This document shows, piece by piece, positions 9,700-35,273 of a stretch of 64,000 bases of DNA. Within the stretch, counting starts at the first letter, position 1; each line of letters starts with the position of its first letter. Source of the stretch: Guillardia theta CCMP2712. Its lineage: Eukaryota > Protista > Cryptophyta. The notes beneath the pieces were generated by a model, which was not told the origin of the DNA, did not search any database, and saw nothing but the letters and a program-made list of their open reading frames with translations. The translations under genes and the position numbers were made by a program. The stretch is taken from contig NW_005434647.1 of the NCBI RefSeq assembly GCF_000315625.1, positions 229,132-293,131 on the forward strand, written 5' to 3'.

Positions 9700-10490
9700 T
9701 GATAGCCTAACGCGACTCGCCCGGCCGAGTAGCGCATGCGCGTCATGGTAGGTCACCAGTGGTAGTCTAGACGATGATCGGATCAGTGAAGTACTGGCCG
9801 CATGTAAGCCATTGAAAGATTCTCCAGCCTGGCAGGCTCGCCGGACTGACTCGCTCTCGGCCGGCCTGCCATTCCGGCCCGCCGGCCCGGGTTGGAGTTC
9901 ACTGTCCGACAGCAATCCGCCGTCACTGTGACCGCGGAGGGGGGGCGCGCCGCGGCTGAGGAGTCGGGCTGCCACTGCCAGTCCGACGGTCAGGAGTCGG
10001 CACCGACGGTGAGTGCCGCCGCGCGGCCCGCCGTGATCGGATTCCGCGGCGCCGTGACAGTGAATCGGACTGGCAGCGCCAAGTGACTCAGTCGGAATGG
10101 CCCCGGCCGGTACTAAATTCAAATGATTTGTGACTCAGTCCGCCGATCATCATGCTAAGCCCGGGCCGCACCGTGACTCGGACCGTCACCGGGTGATCGG
10201 ACCGTGTGACCGTGCCACTGCCAGGAAGTTCAATTCCGACATGATCCTCCGAGGCGGCTCCCCCGGCGGGCCCAACTTGGCCCCCGGGCGGCTCGGTCCT
10301 GACTCGCCGCGGAGTCCGAGTCCGGGGCCGGCGAGAGGCTGGCCGCGGCCCACTGCCAGCCTGGAGTGCGGGCCCCCGGGCCGGGCCCGGCGCTTCAGTT
10401 CAGAGTCGGAAGGCTTCAACCGGGACTCAGCCGACGGGCACTGGAGTGTGACTAGTCACAAGTTTTTCAGACGGTCACTTGAAAGTTTCA
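9700..10490. repeat. GC-rich palindromic-word mosaic island (intergenic)
   Basis: Same word vocabulary as 3960-5480. Confidence 0.55.
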
Positions 10491-10596
10491 GATGCGCCTC
10501 CATGATTTGTAGGCGGAATTGTTGACGAACAAACAAGTCGTGGAGGAGGGCGTGCAATCCGTTGCTCCTTCCGGGCAAGCTTTTCCGTCACTCTCC

Positions 10597-11888
10597 ATGA
10601 GCATGCGTAGCAGAAGCGTCAGGATCTTGCTTCTTGCACTACTGCAGTGTGCTTCATGCTTCATTCTGCCGGGCCCGGGAGGTGTCAGCCAGTGCTCAAC
10701 AAGATCGTTCTTGACATGCCGCAGCATGCACGATAACAACGAGAAGGAGATGTGGTACGAAGAAAGAGTGTCTGAGAATCCCTCCAACGTAGAGAACCTG
10801 ATCAAGTTTGCTCATTTCCTGCAAGGCATTGGTAAGTACGATCGAGCAGCGAAAATGTACAGCACAGCCCTGCAGTTCGATTCGGAGGAGGCAAGGAGGC
10901 AATCGTACGAAATTACAAACAGCAAAAATGCCTCCATCGAGATAAGATCCTGGGAGAAGACAGAGATCGCAAACTTGTTGGAATACAACACACTTTCACA
11001 AGAATGGTCAGCAAGGAAGGTCTTGCTAAGGTGGGAAAGTAGCAAACCGTACTCTGTGGGCGGGCAACGGGAATGTAAGAGGCTCAAGCTTTCTCAACTG
11101 GATGCCCTTAACTTGGTTGAGAGCGAGCAGCTCTCGAAACAGTTCACGACCGGGCTGACCAGTGGAGGAGGCGAATGCGAGGAGCATGTCAGGGATTACT
11201 TCCGGGAGGTGTTGCAGCAGGTCAGGCGAGCATGGATACTTTCAACCATTTCTTAATAGCTGACTCGCTCCCAGCATGTCGCGCAGATGTTCGCGGACGA
11301 GTTCAACTTGCAGTTGGGGCAGGAGGGAGCCAAACAGGAAGTGAATTTTCTTCCGGTGAAAGTGCTCAAGCTCAAGGACGGGATGGCCTCAAACGTTGAG
11401 GCCTTCTTGGAAGGGGACTACAGGAAGCACAACGACAACTTCGGACATGTAATGCCGTAGCTCTCTTCATCTACTGTCATCTACCTCCCTTCATTTAATC
11501 GATACCGCCTTCCTGTTGACAACAGGAGCAATGACTTCCCACGCAGGTGCTGACGACTGACATCATCCCTCCTGCCCTCTCCCACTTCTCCTGGAAGATT
11601 TCAAGCGGGCGGCTCATGCTTTGCGATATACAGGGTGTGGACTGCACTTACACTGATGCGCAGATCCATTCCAACCTCACATCAATGAACTTTGGCAGAG
11701 GTGATTACGGGGAGGTTGGCATGAAGAAATTCTTTGAGAACCACGAATGCAACGAGATCTGCAAGATGCTAAAGTTGGACCAAGGAGAACGTTTTTCTCA
11801 TCCAAGCTTTTTCTCTTCGGGGGAGGGCTTACAAGCAGCTTTTGAAAGGATTGTGTTGCGGGGAGTAGATCTGTTTGTGAAGTTCTAG
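10597..11888 (+). CDS. Alpha-kinase (eEF2K/MHCK family) with N-terminal targeting peptide and one TPR-like repeat; exons 10597-11220, 11287-11448, 11547-11888
   Basis: Motifs: VEAFLEGDYRKHNDNFG, ALSHFSW..SGRLMLCDIQGV..YTDAQIHS, FGRGDYG..GMKKFFENHECNEIC. The TPR-like segment is NPSNVENLIKFAHFLQGIGKYDRAAKMYSTAL. Confidence 0.88.
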
Positions 11889-11919
11889 ATCGCTGAGAGA
11901 CTGGAGACTTTCGAAGTTC

Positions 11920-13080
11920 AGTAATAGACTGTACGGCGGCCCCGGCCACGTGTAGCATCATAGAAGTACTGCAAGTTCCGATGTTTGGATCACCGTGACG
12001 GTACGGCGTGGACTCGGGGGGGCGGCCCGGCCCTCCGAGAGGCTCGGAGTGACTGTGACGGTTCATGGTTCAACGAGACGCCGGTACCGTAGTACTGCGG
12101 CGGGCAGGAACTTTCCCAACTGAGTTCCGAACTTCTTTCCGAATTGTTCAATTCATGAGTCACCCCGCGGCCGCGCCGGCCGCCGCCGCCGCCGCCGCCG
12201 GGCGCGGCGTACTACTCAGGTGACGCCCGGGGACGGTCCGATCCGATCCCCAGGGCCCGGCGTTGAAGGCTACTAGCGGCTACTACTCAGTGTTGCCACG
12301 TGACTCTGATTGTCCTCGCACCGACGGTAGTACTGATTTTTAACTTAACTTTGAGTAAAAGGCACCGTGCCTCAGCGAGTGACGGAGCCTCGCGGCGGAA
12401 CCGTTCAGGAACGGTTGACTCGGGCGGCCCCGGAGGCTCACTGACTGCCGTGGCCGAACCGTTCAGTGACTCGTGACTTGAAGCGGAACCCGGCGTAAGT
12501 AGGCTTTTGGCGAGTCAGTTCCGGATAAGCGGCCAACCTGCCTGAGTCACCGACTCGAGAGTCGGCGAGTCGGCCCTAGCCTCCCGAGTCCGACCTCGGA
12601 GTCCGGCCCCCGACCGTCGTACGGGAGTCATTCCATGTGATCGGAGTCTACCGTACGGTGCCACGGTGCGCGGCTCAGCCGCTCGTCGGGCCCGTTGAAG
12701 GCTTGTGACAAGCACTGACCGTCGCCGGACCAGCCCAGGCTACCGTACGGTACCGCCGGCGGGGTCGGCGGCCGGGGGCCGGTGCCGGGCACACGGTCCG
12801 ACCGTCCGATCACAGGGTCCCGACTCGCGACTCCCGATCACTTCGGATTTGTGATTGGACCGCCGCGGCCGTCAACTGTTCGGCCGAGCCAACGTTTGCT
12901 TGGGCCGCCAATACTGATGAGTAAAGAGTCGATGACTGACTCTGTGAGTCGATCAGCCTGGATGCGGCTCAGCGCCGGGCCGGGGCGGCGGCGGCCGCCC
13001 GACTCGAGGCGGCGGCGCCCGGCAGCACTCAGTGCGCAGTCACTCAGGCTCCGGGCCCGGGGCCGGCTACGCCGTTACAG
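11920..13080. repeat. GC-rich palindromic-word mosaic island (intergenic)
   Basis: CCGTACGG at 12651 and 12743. It shares a 29-mer with 3986-4014. Confidence 0.6.
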
Positions 13081-19831: not shown

Positions 19832-20877
19832 TCAATTGCCGTTGGCGTTCTCCTCCTCCTCCTCCTCCCGCCTCTCAGCCTCCTGCTCCTGCTCCTGAGC
19901 AATCGCATCCTCCTCAGACGGGATGCTCGACACGAAGCACCATCGGTTGCACTCTTCCAGCATCGTCCTGTCCCTCGTGCCCAGCTGCCCCTTCATGATG
20001 TCGTTGAACGTCTTGCAGAACATCTCGTACTCAGTCCCAAAGTCATTCCTGTACTTTACCACGTTGGACGCCAAGTGCTGGTGGGTGCTGCAGTGCAGGA
20101 TAGCAAGAGGGGCGTTGGTAGGAACCGCCTGACCCTCCATCTCCATCTTGAACTGGGGGTCCAGGTACTGGATCTCCCACACGGACGACCATCCTCCGTT
20201 GAGGCTCATGGCCACCTCCTGGTTCCGCGTGTACCTTGAGTAGGACGTGGGAGTCTTGGGGTAGGACGTTAGGAAGGCGTTCTCCCCCCCGGTGATGAGC
20301 GGGTTGCACTTGATCTGGATCTTCTGCCCGAAATGCACTATGTCGTCCTGGAAGTCGAACATCGCGTCCTTCTTGTCTCCCCTCCCCTCCCACCTGCACA
20401 TCTTCCATCACTTCCTCTCCTCCTGCCCGCACGCACCAGCTCCCCCTCACCTCTTGATCTCGAACGTGTTCCTTGCACATGGCTCAGTGTACCACGTGGA
20501 GGTCGTGGCGAAAGATTCGTCGGAGAGATTCTCCTGGGGGTCGCATGCCAGGCACCCGTCGGTCGCCTGGTTGAAGAGCATGATGACGTCACCGAAGTGA
20601 ACGTAGCCATCATTCGCCTTGGGCTTTAGCTCAACTGGCTGCAGCGCATGCGCGAACCGCTGCTCTGCCTGTGTGCTTTTCAGCTCCCCCCTGTCCTTCT
20701 TCAACAGGAAATTCTTCAATCTGGCCTGCAAGAGGTCTATGAGTCCTTGAAACAATGTTATCCTCCCTCTCTCCATACCGCTTCAAGCTCCATGTCTTCG
20801 CTCCAGTTCCCGATCTTCACCCTGGCATTGTACCCCTTGTACCCCTCCATCTGCTGCCTTGTGTATAGGAATTCCAT
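19832..20877 (-). CDS. CFAP161: Cilia- and flagella-associated protein 161; exons 20877-20779, 20725-20451, 20393-19832
   Basis: Motifs: YNARVKIGNWSED, DGYVHFGDVIML, PCARNTF, VHFGQK, LDPQFKMEMEGQAVPTNAPLAILHCSTHQHL, NDFGTEYEM, NRWCF. Splice phases are consistent. Confidence 0.88.
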
Positions 20878-22464
20878 CTTGGTGTTGCTGGAAAAACAAC
20901 CGTTAAGCAAATCTTGTGGTCACAAGAATGTAGATATTTTCTAATTGTCGTGTTTGGGAAGGGCGCTGGTTGTTAGCTACTCTTTCATTTTCCCCGTTGA
21001 GAAATCTCATGCCTATGGGAACAAGCAAGCCAAGTAAAAGAGTCACATCTGCTCCACTCATTGACACAATTGCCTATCTTCTTCGATTATCGCAGATGGC
21101 TATGCGCAAGTCTATCTGCAACCACCAACCTTTCATGCACCAGATTACTCCGGTCTAACTTTCGAAAGCATCCACAGGCTAATCTAATTATTCTCCCTCG
21201 ATTGTTCTAAGAGCATCTCAACTTCGGCACACCAGCTCTCTTGCTTCAGGGTCAATGTTCACTTGTCACTGCACCGCCCTGCATGACTTCATTCATCTTC
21301 TTGTACTTCTCCTTCGCGCATTTGCTCGCCCTCTGCACCATTCTCGCTTCAGTTGAATCAAACGCTGACCACCCCCCACCCCCTTGGATCTCAAACGATC
21401 TGGACGGCACCCCCCTCGATTCCACAAAACTAGCCTTGGAAGTACCGGTTCATCCGCTGGACAAGCCTTTTAGAAGTTCATGGCTCTAATAAGGGATCAT
21501 GTAACGTATTACCAACGTACTTCTGTAACGGCAATGCCGGTTGGTTTGTAACGTTTAGTCCAACGGTTGTAGTTTCGAAGTGCATCGTAGGTTATGTGGC
21601 TGATAGCTTCCAGAAGGGGTGATTTGACGATTGATTCCAGGGGTACTTGAGGATGGGGTACTGTTTTTTTTTCTTGGTGGCATTTCGAAAGATCCAAATT
21701 GTGGTAGGGGTAGTGAAATTACACGGGTAGTATCATATAATTTGAGTATTTTTCGGGGTATTGTCATATACATGCCCATTTTGAGTAGTGATTGAGATAT
21801 CATATTCGATAGGTTGTACCATCATGACTCTCCATTTGACCAATACGGGGGTAGGGTACTTTTTATGAGGGTGGGGGTGATAAAGTTTGTGCCAGCGGCT
21901 TTCCGCCAGGTGGCGCCAGTCGCGTCAGGGGGCGCGGGTCCAGAAGGGTAAAGTTTTTGTCGACAAGGGTATTATGAAATCTTTGGGTGGTGAATTACTG
22001 ACTAAACTTTGTAGTTAAAATTTGAAATTATATATATAAATTATTTACTTAACTATTATTTTGTATAATAGCGGTTACAGCTGATGGCAGGCTCCATGAA
22101 TTCGTCTAGAAAGCATACCCCCCCAGGCAGCCCCCACCCCTTCTTCCAAATCGTGTGCCCTCCCGTTCGAGAGGGCTCTTCCTCCTTCTCCGCTCCCTCT
22201 GCTCCTCCTCAGACAACCTCATCCTCGTCCCACAAGCTCATCTCTGCCGTCTCCAGCCCCCTGTCACAAGTGGATCGTTGAAAGGCGCCTGATACCGCCT
22301 CCATGCACTCGCGAGCTCGTGCTGGCCTCCTGAGGACATTTGGCTGAGTGAGGATTCCTTGTCTCTTCCGCGCCAACAGTCTACTGCTTGAGGCACTAGG
22401 TAGAGCTATAGCCGTAGCACGAGAAGTTGTGTTTCCTTTCTGCTGCTTGCCTCTCGGCATTGGG

Positions 22465-24397
22465 ATGGAGGGAACTACAGGGGATTGCACATCCATCCAT
22501 ATCAAGAGGAGTAGCGTGGCTCGCAGCTCGCAGCTGAGACCTCGAGCACAAACCAACAGTCAGAGAGACAATTCGGCATCAGGGGACTGCGAACGCCCTC
22601 TCGAGCGACTGAAGGGAGGTAGGTTGACGTGCAGCAAGAGGGTCTTTTGGCTGGCTCAGCTCAATGGTGAACTGCTGGTCCAAACTTTCTTGACCCTCAG
22701 TCCACGAGAGGCATCCCGCGCCTCGCAGGTGTGTCGATCATGGCAGCAGACTGTCAGAATGAGTTGTCGGCTGACGTCGCGTTTGGAACTCGGGCAATAC
22801 GATTGCCCCTGGAGGAGGAAGAACCTGGGTAGTCTTTTCAAGAGGTATTGCTCACTTGAAGAGCTTCACTTCTGCACCGAATTTCTCTTGCCCCTCGAAG
22901 CTGTGCAGGCGATCTCGAAGGCTTTTTCTCAGAGCCTTAGATCCTTCACTGGATTCCTCATCTCGAATTGTGTGGAGGGAAAGCAAGTGGCGATAAGTGA
23001 GCTTGCTAAGATCTCAACGCTCGAGTCTCTCACCCTGGAGGGTACACTGATATCGGGGCACAGTCTCGTCGAACTGGCAGACAATTGCCCAAACCTGAGG
23101 AGCGTCTGCTGCCACGAGATACTAGCAACACACTCTCAACTCGCCTACTTATGGGATCGTTGCCCAAACTTGTCGTCTCTGAGTGGAGTGAATTTGTCTG
23201 TTCACAACGAACTCGACGGAGTAGCCAGGGAGCCTGCTAGTCTGATTCTTTCCCAGCTTTCCAGTTTGAATTCGTTGGGACTTAATCTTTTCACAGAATA
23301 TGTACGTGTCACAGACTGCATCGCTAGCATTGATCGTTTCGCAGGATCCACAGATTCTGGACTGCATCTCCAAACTGTCCTTTTCCAACTTGACGTCATT
23401 GAGGCTGCGCGCCTGCACCTTTCCTACTGAAGGAGTCTTGAATCTCTTCACACACTGCACCAGGTCAGCTTCTCTCCATCTTGTGCAGGGCCGGCTCCTG
23501 CTCACCATCCATCACAGATTGGAATCTCTAAGTCTTGTCGCATCCGAAATTCCTGGTTGTGCAGATGAAGTGTTTCGGAATTTAAGCTCGAGTCATTTGC
23601 CTTGTTTAAAGAGCTTGGATCTAGACGAGGACCAAGTACATTTTTTTTCTGAGTTGTTTTTCCCCCTGATTTCAAACAGATATCAGATCGTGGCTTGGCA
23701 GCCCTTGCTCGTCACCCAGTAGCCATGCATTTGACCGCCCTGGAATGTCTCGACTTGAAAAACGCTTCAAGAAGCACGTTCTTTGCGTTGATGGGTTCAC
23801 TTTCCAGCTTGAGCAGGCTGAGGGTCGGAGTAGCAAGGAACACTCCGTGGTTGCAAGGACCCAGCAAGGATTGCCTGATGCTGCCCAATGGCAGCTGTGG
23901 CGAATTCCTGGACGTCTCTAAACGGACTGCGTTTGACTCAGTTGACAACCTGGCTGTTTGCTGGTGCGACGACTTTGGGCTGACTGAGGTCGAAGAGATT
24001 CAACCTCGATGTAAGTACGTGCGTATAGGACAACTCGGCGAGTGGCCCAACCTGTCGCACTTGGAGTTGTGTGACTGGCCAGCCCTGTCGTCCATGGACG
24101 CGGCTATCTTTGCCTCAAGATCTCGGAAGATCAAGCGTTTCACGCTGTCGCTGCCACACGAGCTATCAAGTAACAGAGCTGTTTTTTTTGTGGCTGCATC
24201 ACTGACCAACCGGTTTGACAGGTGACACAATCCGAGTCATTGCCAAAAACTGCAGGGATCTGGAGATGTTCCGGCTGTTCATGTTTTCGGACTCAATGTC
24301 CCTCACTGGAGTTAACGGCAAACGTTGGCAGCAGAGCATCAAGAAGATTTTTTCGAGGTGGCTCCCTTTCTGCCAGTGCTCTATCCATGTTCATTGA
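22465..24397 (+). CDS. F-box/LRR-repeat protein, multi-exon
   Basis: F-box-like LAQLNGELLVQTFLTLSPREASRASQVCRSWQQ is followed by CPNLRSV/CPNLSSL, LESLTLEG and CRDLEMF leucine-rich repeats. Confidence 0.8.
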
Positions 24398-29293: not shown

Positions 29294-31379
29294 ATGGCAA
29301 TGACGAGTTATAGGAATAACAACTCTGCTGATGCCGTACTGATGTATCTCTTCGGCTCTAATATCCGCATGGCAGGGCGCGGTCCGCTTCCGTTCCTCAG
29401 GGCTCCGAGAACTGCCCTCTGCTCCGTTCAGCTGCCGAGCATGAAGAGCATCCAGCACGACGTTAAGCACATGTTTGACTTCATCCCCGACGGTCTTCGA
29501 ACTCCCATCGTCAACGCCTGGGCCGCCACCCTCGCAGGTCTGGCTGCCTACCTGGTCGCGACCCCCATCGAGGCGCTCAAGACCGGGCTGCAGACATGGC
29601 CGGGGAGCACGTGGGTGGGAGTGGCGCAGAGGATCGTGGAAAGGAGAGGGCCGGCAGGGTTCCTGTACGGGCTGGACGCGATGTGGTGGGCGGGGGTCCC
29701 GTACTCGATCGTCATGTACTCCATCTATCAGCCCATCAAGAACAGAGTCAACGAGTTGCTGGGAGGGAAGCAACCCATGGTGGGACAGACGATGGGAGCT
29801 GCCATAGCTGAGATCATCGGACTCACCGTCTTCATCCCCGGGGAGCTGGTCCGCATGGTGAGAGGAGAGGAGGGAGAGGAGGAGGAGGGAGAGGAGGAGG
29901 AGGGAGAGTAGAAGAGAGGCAAGGAGAGGGCAAGGATGTAAGATGGTCAGGCGGGATGGAGTTATTTACAGGAGGGCAGTGAGAAGAGGGGGGCGGGGGG
30001 GAGGGGGGGAGGGACAGAGTCTCCTAGACAAGAACAGGTGAAGGCGAGAAAGAAGGAAGGAGTGACGGATGGTGGAGGCAGAGCTGATACCTGACACGGT
30101 ACTTCAGAGGATGATGAACAACCCCGGGTTGTACGCGTCGTTCCTGCAAGGGCTGCCGGACTTGACAAAGAACGTGAGTCACTGGGATGCTGGAGATGAG
30201 AGGGAGTGACTGCCGTGACCAGGGGTTCGGAGGGATGTACAGGGGCTTCAAGGTCACGATGATCCGGGATGTGCCGTACACAGCCTTGCAGTTCGTCTTG
30301 TTCGAGAACATCCGGCAGTGGTGCATGCGCCAGTCGCCAGACGGTGCGAGGAGGAGATGAGAGATGGTAGTCGATAGGTTGTCTTTGCCGGATGTCGTGT
30401 CGAGGAGCAGGATAGATCTCTTACGACCTCTCTTTTGCTGTTGCTGCGTGATTCAGATGTTACGAGTTATGCTCTAGATGATGGAGGCGATGGTGATGGT
30501 GTTGTTGATGACAGGTTCCGTCACGTTCTTGGAGAGCTTGGGAGTTGGAATCGTTTCTGCCATCTTTGCATCGACTTTCACGATTCCGCTCGACGTCCTC
30601 AAGTGAAAGATTCCCAGTACCCTTAGAGCTGAAAGAGGAGGAAGCAGGCAGGAAGAACAAAAAAGGAAGGGGAGGGGCAGGGCCAACTGATTGTGGGGAG
30701 GCGCACAGGAGAGACAGTTGTCTGGAGTGGCAGAGGGCAGAAGAGAGTTGAGCTCAGGGAGCGACGATGGAAAGAGCCGGAGGGCGCAGGGCGGAGGAGA
30801 GAGCAGGGAGGAGGGGAGAAGGTGGAAGAGGGAGGAGGGAGGGATCTGACTGTTATCGGCAGGTCAAACATCATGACATCCTCGGGCTCTGCCTCTCTCC
30901 GCAAGATGTCAACGACCCTCATCAAGAACGTGAGCCGATCATCCCCAACTTCTTCTTCCTCCCACCCTGTCCACTCTCCATTCCCGCTGCTGCACCCATC
31001 CTCCCCACTCCCCCGCCTCTCGTCATTCGCTCGCTCCCTTCCCTTGACTTCACCTCCCTGCTTCCCCTCCTTCTCTTCTTCCTCTCCTCCCTCCCTCTCT
31101 TGCCCCCTCATCTCCCTCCGCTCCTGCACCCCCTCCGCTCCCTTGCTCGCACGCTCACTCCCTCGCTCCGTTTTCTTCTCTTCTCTCACCCTGGTGATGC
31201 AGGGAGGGCTGTCGAGCATGTTCAAGGGGTTCCTCCCCTACACAGTCATCAGTGAGTGCTGACTTGAGTGTTGTCGCCGTAACGATGAGGCAGACGGCGC
31301 TAAGTGGAGCTCGTCCATGGCAGTTTACAGCACCACGAGAGACTTCTACGGCCTGAAGAGCACGGGAGGTGCCCACTGA
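29294..31379 (+). CDS. Mitochondrial carrier family (SLC25, SAM-carrier-like) protein, multi-exon
   Basis: Three carrier signature motifs (PIEALK, PGELVR, PLDVLK), plus GMYRGFKVTMIRDVPYTALQFVLFE. The last exon ends GGAH*. The start is uncertain. Confidence 0.88.
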
Positions 31380-31752
31380 GAGGAGAAAAGGAGGGGTAGG
31401 AGGAGAGGAGACAAGGAGGAGGAAGAGGGAAAGGGAAGAGGAGCGCTGAGAGAAGCGCTAGAGTGAGGATTGCGGGTTGAAGGTCTCGACGGGGAGAAAT
31501 TTGTTGAGGAAGAAGACATCAAATGGATGTGAAAAATTCCACCACCACCACGACATCCTCCTCCACCACCTTCACCTCCACCACGACCTCCTCCTCCTCC
31601 TCCTCCTCCTCCTCCTCCTCCCCTCCATTTTCTCCACCTCCTCCTTCTCTTTTCCGCCCTTCATCCTCCTCCTTCGGCATCAACTTTAATTCTCCTGTCT
31701 TTCACCTCCCACTTCCTGTCCTTCACTTGCCCTGCCTTCACCTCCTGCTGCC

Positions 31753-33422
31753 TCACAACTTCTTGAAGACCAGCGCCGTCGCTGTCCCCCCGAGCCCAAC
31801 GCTGACGCTCAAGGCGACCTCGAGGTTCTGCCGCGCCTGTCAAGCTCCTGTCGCTGGCGCCTCAAGTCTCTTACCTTGACCTCCTCCTTGGCCGACGTCA
31901 CAAACGAGACCCCGTCTACGACCGCATGCTGGAGATTCGAAAGTATCACTGTGAGTTTCAAAACGAGGAGGAAAGATTGAAGGGTAGTGGTGGAAAGTTT
32001 CCAAGGCGGCGTGAAACTTGCTTCTTACCTTAAGGCTCGTCATGCCAGGAACGACGCCATCACGAAGAGCTCGAGCGCAGACAGCCGCGTTGATGCCTGA
32101 GCGTAAGAGAAGAGACAAGTGAAAAGATAGTGACAAGTGACAAGATTGAGAGAAGTGTGAACGAGAAGGAGAACGACAGAGGGAGAGGGGAGGGGGACGA
32201 TGGGGAGGAGGATGGGAGGGAGGGGAAGGGAACAGGGCAGGGGAGGAGAGGAGAGGAATAGAAGGACTGAGTGAGAATGGGAGGGACAGGGAGAATATGA
32301 TGTGAGAAGAGAAGGAGGGTAAGAAGAATCAGGAAGAATTTGAATCATCAGGACAAGGGGAGCAGAGGACGGAGCGGCAAAGAGCACCAGCACCCACCAG
32401 ATGCAGCAGCTAGCGAGTTTCCAACCCTGCTGCTGACAGAAGAGATCTGACAACGAAAGGAAATCAGATTTCAGATTTCACTAGTTTTCACGACGAAGGC
32501 GATCATCATCATCATCATCATCATCATCATCGTCGTCGTCGTCGTCGTCGTTTCCATCCCCATCCCCATCCCCATCCCCACTGTAGTCATCACCATCACT
32601 ATCACCATCATTCTTGTTTGTTTTATCCTCGTCATCCCCATCCTCATCCTCATCGTCGTCGTCATCATCATCATCCTCATCCTCATCGTCATCGTCATCC
32701 TCCTCCCCACGCACCCTCCTCCTCCTCCTCCTCCTCCTCCTCCTCCTCCTCCTCCTCATCATCATCATCATCATCATCATGAGAAATCGTCTTGATTCCT
32801 CGCTTCTCACCTTTGCTCGTGACATGTTGTCACCAAGAGCTTGTCTGATTCCTTCGATCTCAACCTTTTGTTCTTGGTTACAGTCGCTCTCACTCAACTC
32901 GCCCTCCTCCCCTCCTTCCCCTCGCTTCCTTCTTCCTTCCGATCTCTTTCTCTTTCCCTTCTCTTTCCCTCCTCTTCACCTAACCTTGTCGAATTTAGGG
33001 ACGCCAACGCCATGAGCGCAAACAAAGTCAACCTGCAAGACGTCAGGAAATCATCGTCCTTCTACCTTACCAACATCTCCCAGTGTTAACCAATCACATC
33101 GTTCAAAAAGGTTCATATCATCGAATTCAGCATCGATTGTCTCGACGAGACAACATAAACCATTGGAGCAGCTTCTACTTCACCGATCAAACCTCAACTA
33201 CATCATATCTTCTGCACGTCCACATTTTCTCATTAACCTCCTTCACATTGTTGTGCTACATTTACAACTCTCACCGCAGAAGCTTCAACTTTCGCATCCT
33301 TCAACGCAAGATTGATCGATTGCGCAATAGCTTCGCTCGATGGCATCCCTCCCAACCCGAGCTGTCGGGATAGTCAGATCATCATCATCATCACCACCAC
33401 CACCACCACCACCACCACCACC

Positions 33423-33477
<55 letters not shown>

Positions 33478-34885
33478 GCACCACCATCACCATCACCATC
33501 ACCATCACCATCACCATCATCATCATCAACAACTTTGTCAGCACCAGCATCATCAAGGAGAACTACGATGATAGATAGCAACATCTACTATCACCTCTTC
33601 GTCCATCTCAACTCCCTGCGCCATTCCAACTCCCGCGACCTCACAGTACATCTTTGCTCCACGAGCCTTCGCGTGTTCCTCCGCCTCCATCAGCAGCACG
33701 CCGCTGCCTTCAGAAAGCAGAAATCCCTTGCTCTCCTTGTCGAATGCATTGCTGCCGATACAAGTTACCTTTGCGCTCCCTTCCCTCCCCCCCCCGCTTC
33801 CCTATTCTGCCTCCATCCCGTCTCCCCAGCGGTTCTCATACGTCTCTTGCTTCCTTGAGTTGACCATCCTCCTCCTCCCCTCTTTCTTCCCCCTCCTCCC
33901 TTCCTCCCCCCTTCCTCTCTCCCTCCATCTCCTCCTCTACTTACTTTGCATGCGTCTGATCCTCATTGCAGCCCTTGGCGAGCGTGGAGAGCTTGTTGTA
34001 ACCCGCAACGATGCACTCAGTCAGGCAGGACTCACTTCCTCCTGCCGCCATGATCGTCGCCTCCCCCGACACGAGGAACCTCCGCGCCTGAGCGATCGAC
34101 AAGGCTCCTCCTGCCGCCTCTCCCCCGTAGCCTCCGATGCAGTAGTTGGGCCCCTCCGCCCCGAGCTCAACAGCAGCAACGCCGCTTGCGCTATTGAGGA
34201 TGAAGGAGGGGACGATGAAGGGGGAGATCTTCTTGAACCCCTCGTACGTCAGCTTGCACCCGTCAACAAACAGCGGGCCCTTGTAGATGCTGTTCCTTCC
34301 TGCGAACGTCCCGTCCCCCCACGCCGCGCCTGAAGGCAACTGGTCGTACTCCGTGTGCTTCTGCCACTTGCTCCCTGCCTCCTCGAAGAACTCGGAGCCG
34401 CCGATGGCGGAGGCGATGAGCACGCCGAACTTGTCCTTGTCTGCCACAGTTTCTGTGTTGAGATTCGCGTCCTGGACGGCGAGCTTGGAGGCAGCGATAC
34501 CCATCTGCATGTACCTGCTCTGTCTCTTGGCTTCCTTCTTGTTCTTGTACCATTCCTCGGCCTTGAAGTCGCTGACGACTCCGGCAACCTTGCAAGGGAA
34601 CTCCTCAGCCCAGGAGGGAAGAGACGTAAAGCTCCTCTTGTCTGCGAACACACTCTCGAAGAACTGGTCGCTTCCTGTTCCCACGGGCGATACGATCCCC
34701 AGCCCCGTCACGACCACCCTAGGGTTTCCTCCACCCGATGCTGCCATCCTGAGCTGTCCAGCGCTTCTCCTCGCGGTCCGACGTGGAGCTACTGAGAATC
34801 TCGTTCCCATCATGCTCGTTGTCATCCCCTGGAACGCCAGCGCCGCATGCAACGTCGCCGCCGCCAAGAGCAGCGTTCGCACCAT
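31753..34885 (-). CDS. Plastid-targeted FabF/KAS II-family ketosynthase paralog lacking the catalytic Cys; about 9 exons
   Basis: Presequence [20 protein letters not shown]. Core motifs: [95 protein letters not shown]. Confidence 0.88.
32500..32780. repeat. Compound trinucleotide microsatellite (CAT/CGT/CCT) in a KAS intron
   Basis: Read directly from the sequence. Confidence 0.9.
33378..33532. repeat. Compound trinucleotide microsatellite (CAT/CAC/AAC) in a KAS intron
   Basis: Read directly from the sequence. Confidence 0.9.
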
Positions 34886-35273
34886 GGCCACCCTTGAATG
34901 TAGGACCCTACCCCCTCAACAGCCCAACTCTACCCCAAGGGCCTCTCAGACCGTCTACTGAGTCATCTTCCGGAGATGACTGAGGCTGTCGGCCCGCCGA
35001 GCGACTAGACCGGCCCGGGCCGGGCCGCCGCCGCAGTTCGAGACTCAACTGACCGTCAACTAATGTTATGAAGTAGACGATTGTCAGTGGAGTGAAGGAT
35101 CACCAAGTGTGGCTGGTAAGTTATGACGGAGAGCTGAGTCAGCCTCGGAAGTTTAATTCAATCAGTCATTCAATGTACTTGCTAATCAATGAAGGCTGGC
35201 ACTTGGCAGCCGGCGCGGCCGCTCGCCTCACCTCCGCCCTTACTCGAAGGCGGAACTTGCAGCTTGTAGCTTC

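Follow-up and report, generated by a model that had tools for sequence, protein, structure and literature searches.

A cysteine-less FabF paralog with a predicted plastid location in Guillardia theta and related cryptophytes: a candidate chain-length-factor-like partner of an active ketosynthase

Type II fatty-acid synthesis in algal plastids is usually described as relying on homodimeric, catalytically intact ketoacyl-ACP synthases (KAS) I, II and III (ACP, acyl carrier protein). In a survey of 213 protist transcriptomes, the Cys-His-His triad is stated as conserved (PMC5029157). By analogy, the closest precedent for the gene described here is the FabF2/FabFmut pair of anammox bacteria, which is active only as a heterodimer; the lid residues of its inactive subunit line the active tunnel and tune substrate length, and ACP contacts both subunits (bioRxiv 10.64898/2026.05.19.726425, a 2026 preprint). 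We analyzed a 64,000 bp stretch of the genome of the cryptophyte Guillardia theta CCMP2712 (contig NW_005434647.1, positions 229,132 to 293,131; hereafter the window, whose own coordinates are used throughout), which carries on its minus strand, at 34885-31753, a gene for a FabF-like protein having Ala in place of the nucleophilic Cys. Judging from the sequence and from analogy, we see about an even chance that this Cys-less paralog is a non-condensing, chain-length-factor (CLF)-like subunit of an active ketosynthase (KS).

The window protein and its cryptophyte relatives (the Cys-less family) share with the anammox FabFmut subunit that they are FabF homologs of a fatty-acid-type system, keep the FabF fold and have a mutated triad (in FabFmut, Cys to Val or Thr, and His to Asn, Glu or Cys); in both cases the closest structural neighbor is the FabF of B. 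subtilis. The two differ in that FabFmut is bacterial, is encoded beside its partner, has lost both His residues, and has a heterodimer and a lid role that were established by experiment, whereas the Cys-less family is nuclear, is unlinked to a KS gene, mostly keeps His303 (FabF numbering), carries a large insert in the lid, and displays no charge asymmetry.

The gene is comprised of nine exons (1533 nt) separated by introns that are all of the GT..AG type, and encodes a product of 510 amino acids (aa). Its parts are as follows.

31753..34885, minus strand: whole gene from ATG to TGA, nine exons and eight GT..AG introns, with 8/8 junctions found in intron-less contigs of three runs
33945..34885, minus strand: exon 1, residues 1-314 (last codon split), presequence and most of the KS N-terminal domain
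33595..33751, minus strand: exon 2, residues 315-366 (gene model and transcript contigs)
33275..33361, minus strand: exon 3, residues 367-395, holding a degenerate gating loop 2 (gene model and transcript contigs)
32985..33032, minus strand: exon 4, AHGVGVP in place of AHGTSTP (gene model, transcript contigs and alignment)
32811..32864, minus strand: exon 5 (gene model and transcript contigs)
32398..32446, minus strand: exon 6, Ser434 and Asn439 (gene model, transcript contigs and alignment)
32029..32096, minus strand: exon 7, Asn448 at the position of FabF Glu349 (gene model, transcript contigs and alignment)
31875..31928, minus strand: exon 8 (gene model and transcript contigs)
31753..31827, minus strand: exon 9 including the stop codon, GLGG in place of GFGG (gene model, transcript contigs and alignment)

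Public runs were aligned to window positions 31700-34950, leaving out the intronic repeats at 32490-32789 and 33372-33539. Transcript contigs of 1612-1667 nt from three runs (X1, X2 and X3, belonging to three studies and two organism labels) lack precisely the eight introns of the gene model and match the exons without a mismatch. On the 5' side the contigs extend to at least 34935, one of them reaching 50 nt upstream of the ATG, and on the 3' side they continue past 31700. Approximately ten runs contain 0.42-0.45 of the sampled words of the stretch, for an exonic fraction of 0.47, while run X19 has five raw RNA reads on it, too few to determine strand or expression level. Because the contigs are intron-less and the share of words is close to the exonic fraction, the gene is transcribed and spliced as modelled: it is expressed and correctly modelled. 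The earlier note on this DNA, made from the letters alone, had described clean introns and called for RNA data on the exons; these data bear out the introns at 8/8 junctions, and all of the note's coordinates and residues proved correct when compared with the gene model, the phmmer searches and the alignment.

The two repeats left out of the alignment, in introns 5 and 2 respectively, are trinucleotide microsatellites ((GAT)n, (GAG/GGA)n, (GGT)n and (GTT)n on the gene strand). Purine-rich parts of introns 4 and 1 (32955-32972 and 33867-33890) match contigs of runs X1 and X2 with depths of 23.5 and 365.6, which link 32972 to 33867 via 13 other letters and have loose ends on both sides; these contigs probably derive from a different locus or transcript in which a GA-rich repeat of similar kind occurs.

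The product has the domain structure and fold of FabF/KAS II. Exon 1 matches the Pfam ketoacyl-synthase N-terminal domain PF00109 (E 4.3e-22) and solved FabF structures (phmmer, best E 9.5e-28), and the orthologs carry both PF00109 and PF02801. The family has approximately 32-40% identity to FabF, nests in algal plastid KAS II, and has in common with FabF the ACP-docking residues K65, R/K68, R/K69, R/K127 and S130-P131-F132. It is different from FabF in lacking Cys163, in having Asn in place of His340, in its lid insert and GGY insert, and in its position below the cut-off of the TIGR03150 equivalog model, for which three full-length orthologs scored 285-322 bits against a threshold of 493.75 bits. 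An AlphaFold2 (AF2) model of the ortholog P0004 reached a predicted local distance difference test score (pLDDT) of 87 and a predicted TM-score (pTM) of 0.90, with the lid insert at pLDDT < 50, and the best Foldseek matches of this model were FabF structures (target-normalised TM-scores 0.92-0.94). According to this model, the thiolase fold is kept in the Cys-less family.

The N-terminus has the features expected of a plastid protein.

34835..34885, minus strand: signal peptide, residues 1-17, ending in ALA (the sequence reads ...HAALA, then FQG)
34834-34832, minus strand: codon of Phe18, directly after the signal peptide and followed by a transit-peptide-like stretch to approximately residue 50

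In cryptophytes, a signal peptide followed by Phe is the signature of import into the plastid stroma. All six N-terminally complete homologs (the window protein, P0002, P0004, P0005, P0006 and P0010) have a hydrophobic signal peptide with Phe directly after the AXA-like site, and the product is predicted to be targeted to the plastid stroma. The model, contigs and alignment together bear out the earlier description of a full-length, spliced FabF paralog whose active site is rewired and whose signal peptide is directly succeeded by Phe.

The position of the nucleophile was found by phmmer against FabF structures; the other positions were derived from an alignment with 37 FabF-type sequences and are numbered after P0043, whose register agrees with that of E. 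coli FabF at C163, H303, K335 and H340. The active-site replacements are listed here.

34117-34115, minus strand: codon of Ala257 (first Ala of GEAAGG), which aligns with the nucleophile Cys163 of FabF
34127..34135, minus strand: GGY insertion, residues 251-253, just before the former nucleophile position (gap in the phmmer alignment)
33014-33012, minus strand: codon of the His at FabF His303, which is kept
exon 4, minus strand: Val and Val in place of FabF Thr305 and Thr307
32434-32432, minus strand: codon of Ser434, at FabF Lys335
32419-32417, minus strand: codon of Asn439, at FabF His340
32091-32089, minus strand: codon of Asn448, at FabF Glu349
31794-31792, minus strand: codon of Leu498, at the gatekeeper Phe400
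exon 9, minus strand: Ala at FabF Asn403

For the Cys-His-His triad plus Lys335, the window protein has Ala, His, Asn and Ser. At position 163, Gly or Ala stands in every family sequence covering it (20/20, the window protein included) and Cys in none, and this residue is preceded by Glu or Asp (Glu in the window protein) rather than by the Ala162 of FabF. The GGY insertion is present in every sequence covering its site, and Asn340 is invariant wherever covered. Other changes belong to single lineages: K335S is specific to the lineage of the window, Lys being found elsewhere in the family; Glu349, replaced by Asn in the window protein, is kept in the other members; and P0007 alone among the sequences covering the position has Thr instead of His303. 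Across the family, Phe400 is replaced by Leu or Met, Thr270 by Leu, Glu or Asp, Thr305 by Val, Ala, Ser or Leu, and Thr307 by Val, Ile or Asp, and Arg206 and Asn403 are also replaced; in gating loop 2 of the window protein, H268, T270 and P272 have become L, L and G. Half of the FabF columns with at least 90% conservation (50/100) are changed in the family, and these gather at the catalytic centre: A162, C163, H268, T270, P272, N301, T305, S306 and T307, together with H340, G343, G346, PTIN 364-367, F400 of gating loop 1, N403 and R206. A mutational study ties the last of these to turnover and not to ACP affinity (bioRxiv 10.1101/2020.07.09.196451). Since the protein is without a nucleophile, its sequence excludes that this FabF paralog condenses by the known Cys-dependent mechanism.

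Condensation by means of another nucleophile, for example the Cys of the GPNYC motif, seems very improbable to us. This Cys is invariant in the family, and the three-residue insertion separates it from the former nucleophile site; however, the helix starting from the nucleophilic elbow aligns with Gly or Ala at its N-terminus, and His340, Thr305, Thr307 and Phe400 are gone as well. The FabF proteins of B. subtilis (GVNSC) and Synechocystis (GPNNC) have a Cys on the same strand besides their catalytic Cys, and the GPNYC residue was rejected as a nucleophile. The replacement of Cys by Ala reported in the earlier note stands, and the refutation it had foreseen, that the upstream Cys occupies the nucleophile position, fails with these canonical enzymes carrying both.

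The residues that remain in the active site could also suit a malonyl-ACP decarboxylase, in which the retained His and the Asn would make acetyl-ACP and so prime or regulate plastid fatty-acid synthesis. His303 is kept in all but one of the sequences covering it, Asn340 is invariant, Asp311 and Glu314 are unchanged, and so are ACP-docking regions 1 and 3. Chalcone synthase (CHS) and FabH use a His-Asn pair for decarboxylation, and some decarboxylase activity remains in condensing enzymes whose Cys has been mutated to Ala. The family resembles FabH and chalcone synthase in having His and Asn at the two oxyanion-hole positions, but these enzymes belong to another branch of the thiolase superfamily, and the likeness is one of two residues in a window protein that matches FabF-type models only. 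Similarly, KSQ loading domains and Cys-to-Gln mutants of FabF have the KS fold without the Cys nucleophile, whereas the window protein has no Gln, second His or Lys335, and its malonyl-binding Thr residues and gatekeeper Phe are replaced. In animal fatty-acid synthase, decarboxylation was reportedly boosted by Cys-to-Gln only, and not by Ala or Gly (Witkowski et al., 1999), and we know of no case of Ala or Gly at the Cys position promoting it. Several further points count against a decarboxylase: the malonyl- and phosphopantetheine (PPant)-binding Thr270, Thr305 and Thr307 are all replaced, as are Phe400, Asn403 and Arg206; motifs 301-312 and 325-348 are less constrained than in FabF; Lys335 and Glu349 (window) or His303 (P0007) have been lost, yet the window gene is under purifying selection; and with a FabH gene in the genome a priming decarboxylase is not obviously needed. 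The inactive anammox subunit alone gave no decarboxylation (bioRxiv 10.64898/2026.05.19.726425). We regard a decarboxylase as unlikely. Of the two roles offered in the earlier note, CLF-like subunit or malonyl-ACP decarboxylase, the evidence leans towards the former and away from the latter, on account of the replaced malonyl/PPant-binding residues, the losses of Lys335/Glu349 and of His303, and the presence of FabH.

The surfaces of the protein have a different history from its catalytic centre, and two segments illustrate this.

34511..34540, minus strand: ACP-docking region 1, residues 116-125, with FabF K65, R68 and K69 (alignment)
34253..34366, minus strand: 38-residue family-specific insert, W174-K211, in the loop of the helix-loop-helix lid/dimerisation motif, before docking regions 2 and 3

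The basic residues of docking region 1 (K65, K68 and R69 in the family) are unchanged in 7/7 full-length members, the fragment P0020 having Asn at position 68; their role in ACP docking has been described for FabF (K65/R68/K69; bioRxiv 10.1101/2020.07.09.196451). Also unchanged in the seven full-length members are K127, S130-P131-F132 of region 3, D265, D311, E314 and the lid residues 129-135. [quoted passage not shown] In the anammox pair this motif binds to the partner subunit, lies over the substrate tunnel and makes contact with helix II of ACP (bioRxiv 10.64898/2026.05.19.726425). Segment by segment, identity is higher within the family than among FabFs at positions 37-48, 61-72 (0.94 vs 0.50), 109-180 and 349-360, and lower at 205-228, 301-312, 325-348 and 361-384; the family retains the segments corresponding to the FabF dimer interface and to its ACP-docking regions 1 and 3. 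As read from these alignments, selection has shifted away from the chemistry and towards the surfaces, namely docking region 1 and the lid/dimer motif.

The same surfaces would also serve a homodimeric pseudoenzyme that binds, sequesters or scaffolds ACP or acyl-ACP, or that engages some other partner via the 38-residue insert, and that forms no pair with a KS. The docking residues are kept and the insert is located in an ACP-contacting loop, the pocket has gained in hydrophobicity (Val, Ile or Leu for Thr; Ala for Asn), the strong constraint rests on surfaces and not on catalytic motifs, and the interface segments have no feature that forbids a homodimer. However, the Cys-less KS paralogs that have been studied, the CLFs and the anammox FabFmut, act as heterodimer partners, and to our knowledge no such binding role exists for a KS-fold protein; we consider this explanation somewhat unlikely.

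Relatives were searched with exon 1 among 5.8 billion proteins. Approximately 20 relatives with 53-96% identity were found, after which identity falls to approximately 37% for ordinary FabFs. The relatives with a name are from Rhodomonas salina and Cryptomonas curvata, and the others are from marine metagenomes and metatranscriptomes, including Tara samples. Further word-index and profile searches gave only fragments of the same cluster; the word-index and exhaustive profile searches found no family member outside this cryptophyte-type cluster, though multi-KS megasynthases fill the top of the results and could hide distant members. A feature search of the ESM Atlas gave nothing beyond generic bacterial FabF clusters. 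The family is thinly sampled in taxa, most members having no species name, and on these sequences the Cys-less family has so far been found only in cryptophytes.

P0126, P0131 and 14 similar profile matches of approximately 800 aa look like bacterial tandem ketosynthases. Their N-terminal domain has Cys/His/Lys/His, and their C-terminal domain is CLF-like, with mostly degenerate His residues and with Cys replaced by Thr, Ala, Arg, Tyr, Gly, Gln, Glu, Val, Trp or Pro. Used here for comparison, these CLF-like domains, some of which have Gly or Ala at this site as the Cys-less family does, count in favor of a CLF-like role for the family.

The substitutions are shared by the orthologs, with Gly or Ala plus Asn found across cryptophyte genera, which speaks against sequencing error or recent decay, a point on which the earlier note had wanted its reading checked. 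Each of two sister lineages has undergone one further catalytic loss (K335 together with E349 in the window protein, H303 in P0007). Compared with the 94%-identical relative on metagenome contig L025, the ratio of nonsynonymous to synonymous divergence (dN/dS) over exons 1-2, the first 366 codons, is 0.21 (dN 0.024, dS 0.118), and intron 1 differs at 12% of positions; for these 366 codons the ratio therefore indicates purifying selection in a lineage without Lys335 and Glu349. The further catalytic losses K335S and E349N in the window lineage are what a decaying pseudogene might show, but a pseudogene, or an assembly or sequencing artefact, is scarcely credible and was rejected on the intact frame, the spliced mRNA with zero mismatches in several studies, the dN/dS of 0.21 and the substitutions common to cryptophyte genera.

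One apparent family sequence was set aside. P0269 (258 aa, on a metagenome contig of 1364 nt) combines Gly at the nucleophile position with an intact HGTST/His, but its first approximately 115 residues are near-identical to P0005 and the rest belongs to an unrelated KS type with intact His/Lys/His; it was rejected as an intermediate form, being a chimeric assembly, and would mimic such a form in an automated survey. On the 42 kb marine metagenome contig L035, at 10001-12963, the ortholog P0381 is intron-less and lies tail to tail with an enoyl-ACP reductase gene at a distance of approximately 410 bp (NF004957, 398.7 bits, above the cut-off). The FabI homologs of the genome of the window are located on contigs C99 and C7, so that this linkage is not conserved and carries little weight.

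In maximum-likelihood trees the family forms one clade (SH-like approximate likelihood ratio test, SH-aLRT, 100) whose stem measures 1.06-1.25 substitutions per site, compared with 0.05-0.5 for neighboring internal branches and ordinary lengths within the family. The clade is nested inside algal plastid-type KAS II (SH-aLRT 98-100), its nearest neighbors being ochrophyte KAS II of Fibrocapsa and Mallomonas (SH-aLRT 98), in which Cys/His/Lys/His are kept. In an approximately unbiased (AU) test, placement of the family as sister to the canonical FabF type of cryptophytes was not rejected (p 0.25), so that descent is supported for plastid KAS II as a whole rather than for one particular parent paralog. 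These sequence comparisons support the view that the family descends from algal plastid KAS II and was remodelled along one long stem branch.

The earlier note had called for a phylogeny against FabF and CLF. A FabF-type origin in algal plastid KAS II was found, and membership of the actinobacterial CLF clade was not. The likeness to the CLFs of type II polyketide synthases (KS-beta; the actinorhodin CLF 1TQY_B, Iga12 and AntE) consists of a KS-fold subunit without a nucleophile and, going by the motifs EQAGG and DGAGVP named in the earlier note, perhaps also of a similar local motif with Glu before the lost Cys and AGG after it; the differences are an independent origin of the cryptophyte family in algal KAS II, Ala or Gly in place of Gln, the lack of a KS-alpha neighbor and a context of primary metabolism in the plastid. 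The match of 1TQY_B to exon 1 is weak (E 8.3e-10) and no better than that of 1TQY_A.

Two metatranscriptome proteins, P0316 and P0376 (453 and 479 aa), nest elsewhere, in a haptophyte-type clade with Chrysochromulina and Pavlovales. In the motif VSESATG, Ser stands for Cys and follows a Glu; in ANGAAE, Asn stands for His303 and neither Thr remains; and in GHGG, His stands for Phe400, whereas Lys335 and His340 are kept. From its sequence, this type appears to be another non-condensing KAS II paralog of independent origin.

The CLF-like role rests on the combination of what is kept and what is lost: because the fold, the interface and the docking helix are kept and the lid has been elaborated while the catalytic centre erodes, the protein would be a non-catalytic partner. 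It would pair with an intact plastid ketosynthase of the same genome, either the FabF type on contig C2 or the FabB type on C218, and would lend both the enlarged lid and the ACP-docking helix to the substrate tunnel and entrance of that partner. The pairing would alter chain-length preference or the use of ACP, with the Cys-less subunit condensing nothing itself. Three intact ketosynthases of the genome are candidate partners: two FabB-type KAS I genes with intact Cys/His/Lys/His at C111:131.3-132.4 kb and C218:37.8-38.9 kb, the latter encoding a signal peptide followed by Phe, and a canonical FabF-type gene at C2:464.5-466.9 kb; the genome also has one FabH-type gene (C22:37.5-38.9 kb). The duplicated KAS/FabI set may serve two compartments.

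Several observations weigh against this partner role. Most members retain His303, Lys335, Asp311, Glu314 and Glu349, and every member has Asn340, a degree of catalytic-site conservation above that of the CLF-like domains of bacterial tandem ketosynthases, and residual chemistry could account for it. No partner of the Cys-less paralog was identified, no KS gene adjoins it, and no charge asymmetry of the anammox kind was found between the lid or helix 196-206 of the family and those of the candidate partners. In addition, the insert on which the enlarged lid depends was modelled at low confidence in P0004, and the inactive anammox subunit also crystallised as a homodimer (bioRxiv 10.64898/2026.05.19.726425).

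Among the domain matches of the neighboring open frames in the window there was neither a lipid-synthesis gene nor an adjacent KS gene. The following matches were found.

19832-20401, minus strand: CFAP161 match (E 1.1e-15)
22348-23430, plus strand: F-box domain match (E 1.2e-4)
29294-29911, plus strand: mitochondrial carrier repeat match (E 1.3e-10)

Full-text searches of the literature turned up no account of a Cys-less KAS from plastids in algae or any eukaryote, in agreement with the earlier note, which had called the system undescribed in algae. Inactive KS partners are already known in bacteria; what would be new, by analogy with them, is the independent rise of an inactive partner with the KS fold within a plastid pathway of a eukaryote. 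A whole algal lineage retains a Cys-less KAS II paralog that is expressed and under selection, a caution that algal genes annotated as 'KAS II' need not all encode active condensing enzymes, and should the protein prove to be a decarboxylase or a binding protein instead, it would still be a clean natural case of an enzyme put to new use. Reasoning from the bacterial examples, we tentatively propose, at somewhat less than an even chance, that cryptophyte plastids contain a heterodimeric KS/CLF-like module in primary type II fatty-acid synthesis, in which the Cys-less paralog sets the chain-length or ACP preference of an active KAS. The haptophyte-type Ser/Asn variant hints that CLF-like recruitment may have happened more than once. 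If the CLF-like role is true, the KS/CLF principle of bacterial secondary metabolism and anammox lipids would enter eukaryotic primary lipid metabolism, as the first KS/CLF-like module in a eukaryote, evolved independently of the bacterial CLFs. Cryptophytes matter in food webs as a major source of polyunsaturated fatty acids, and the paralog would then offer a handle on how they set acyl chain length.

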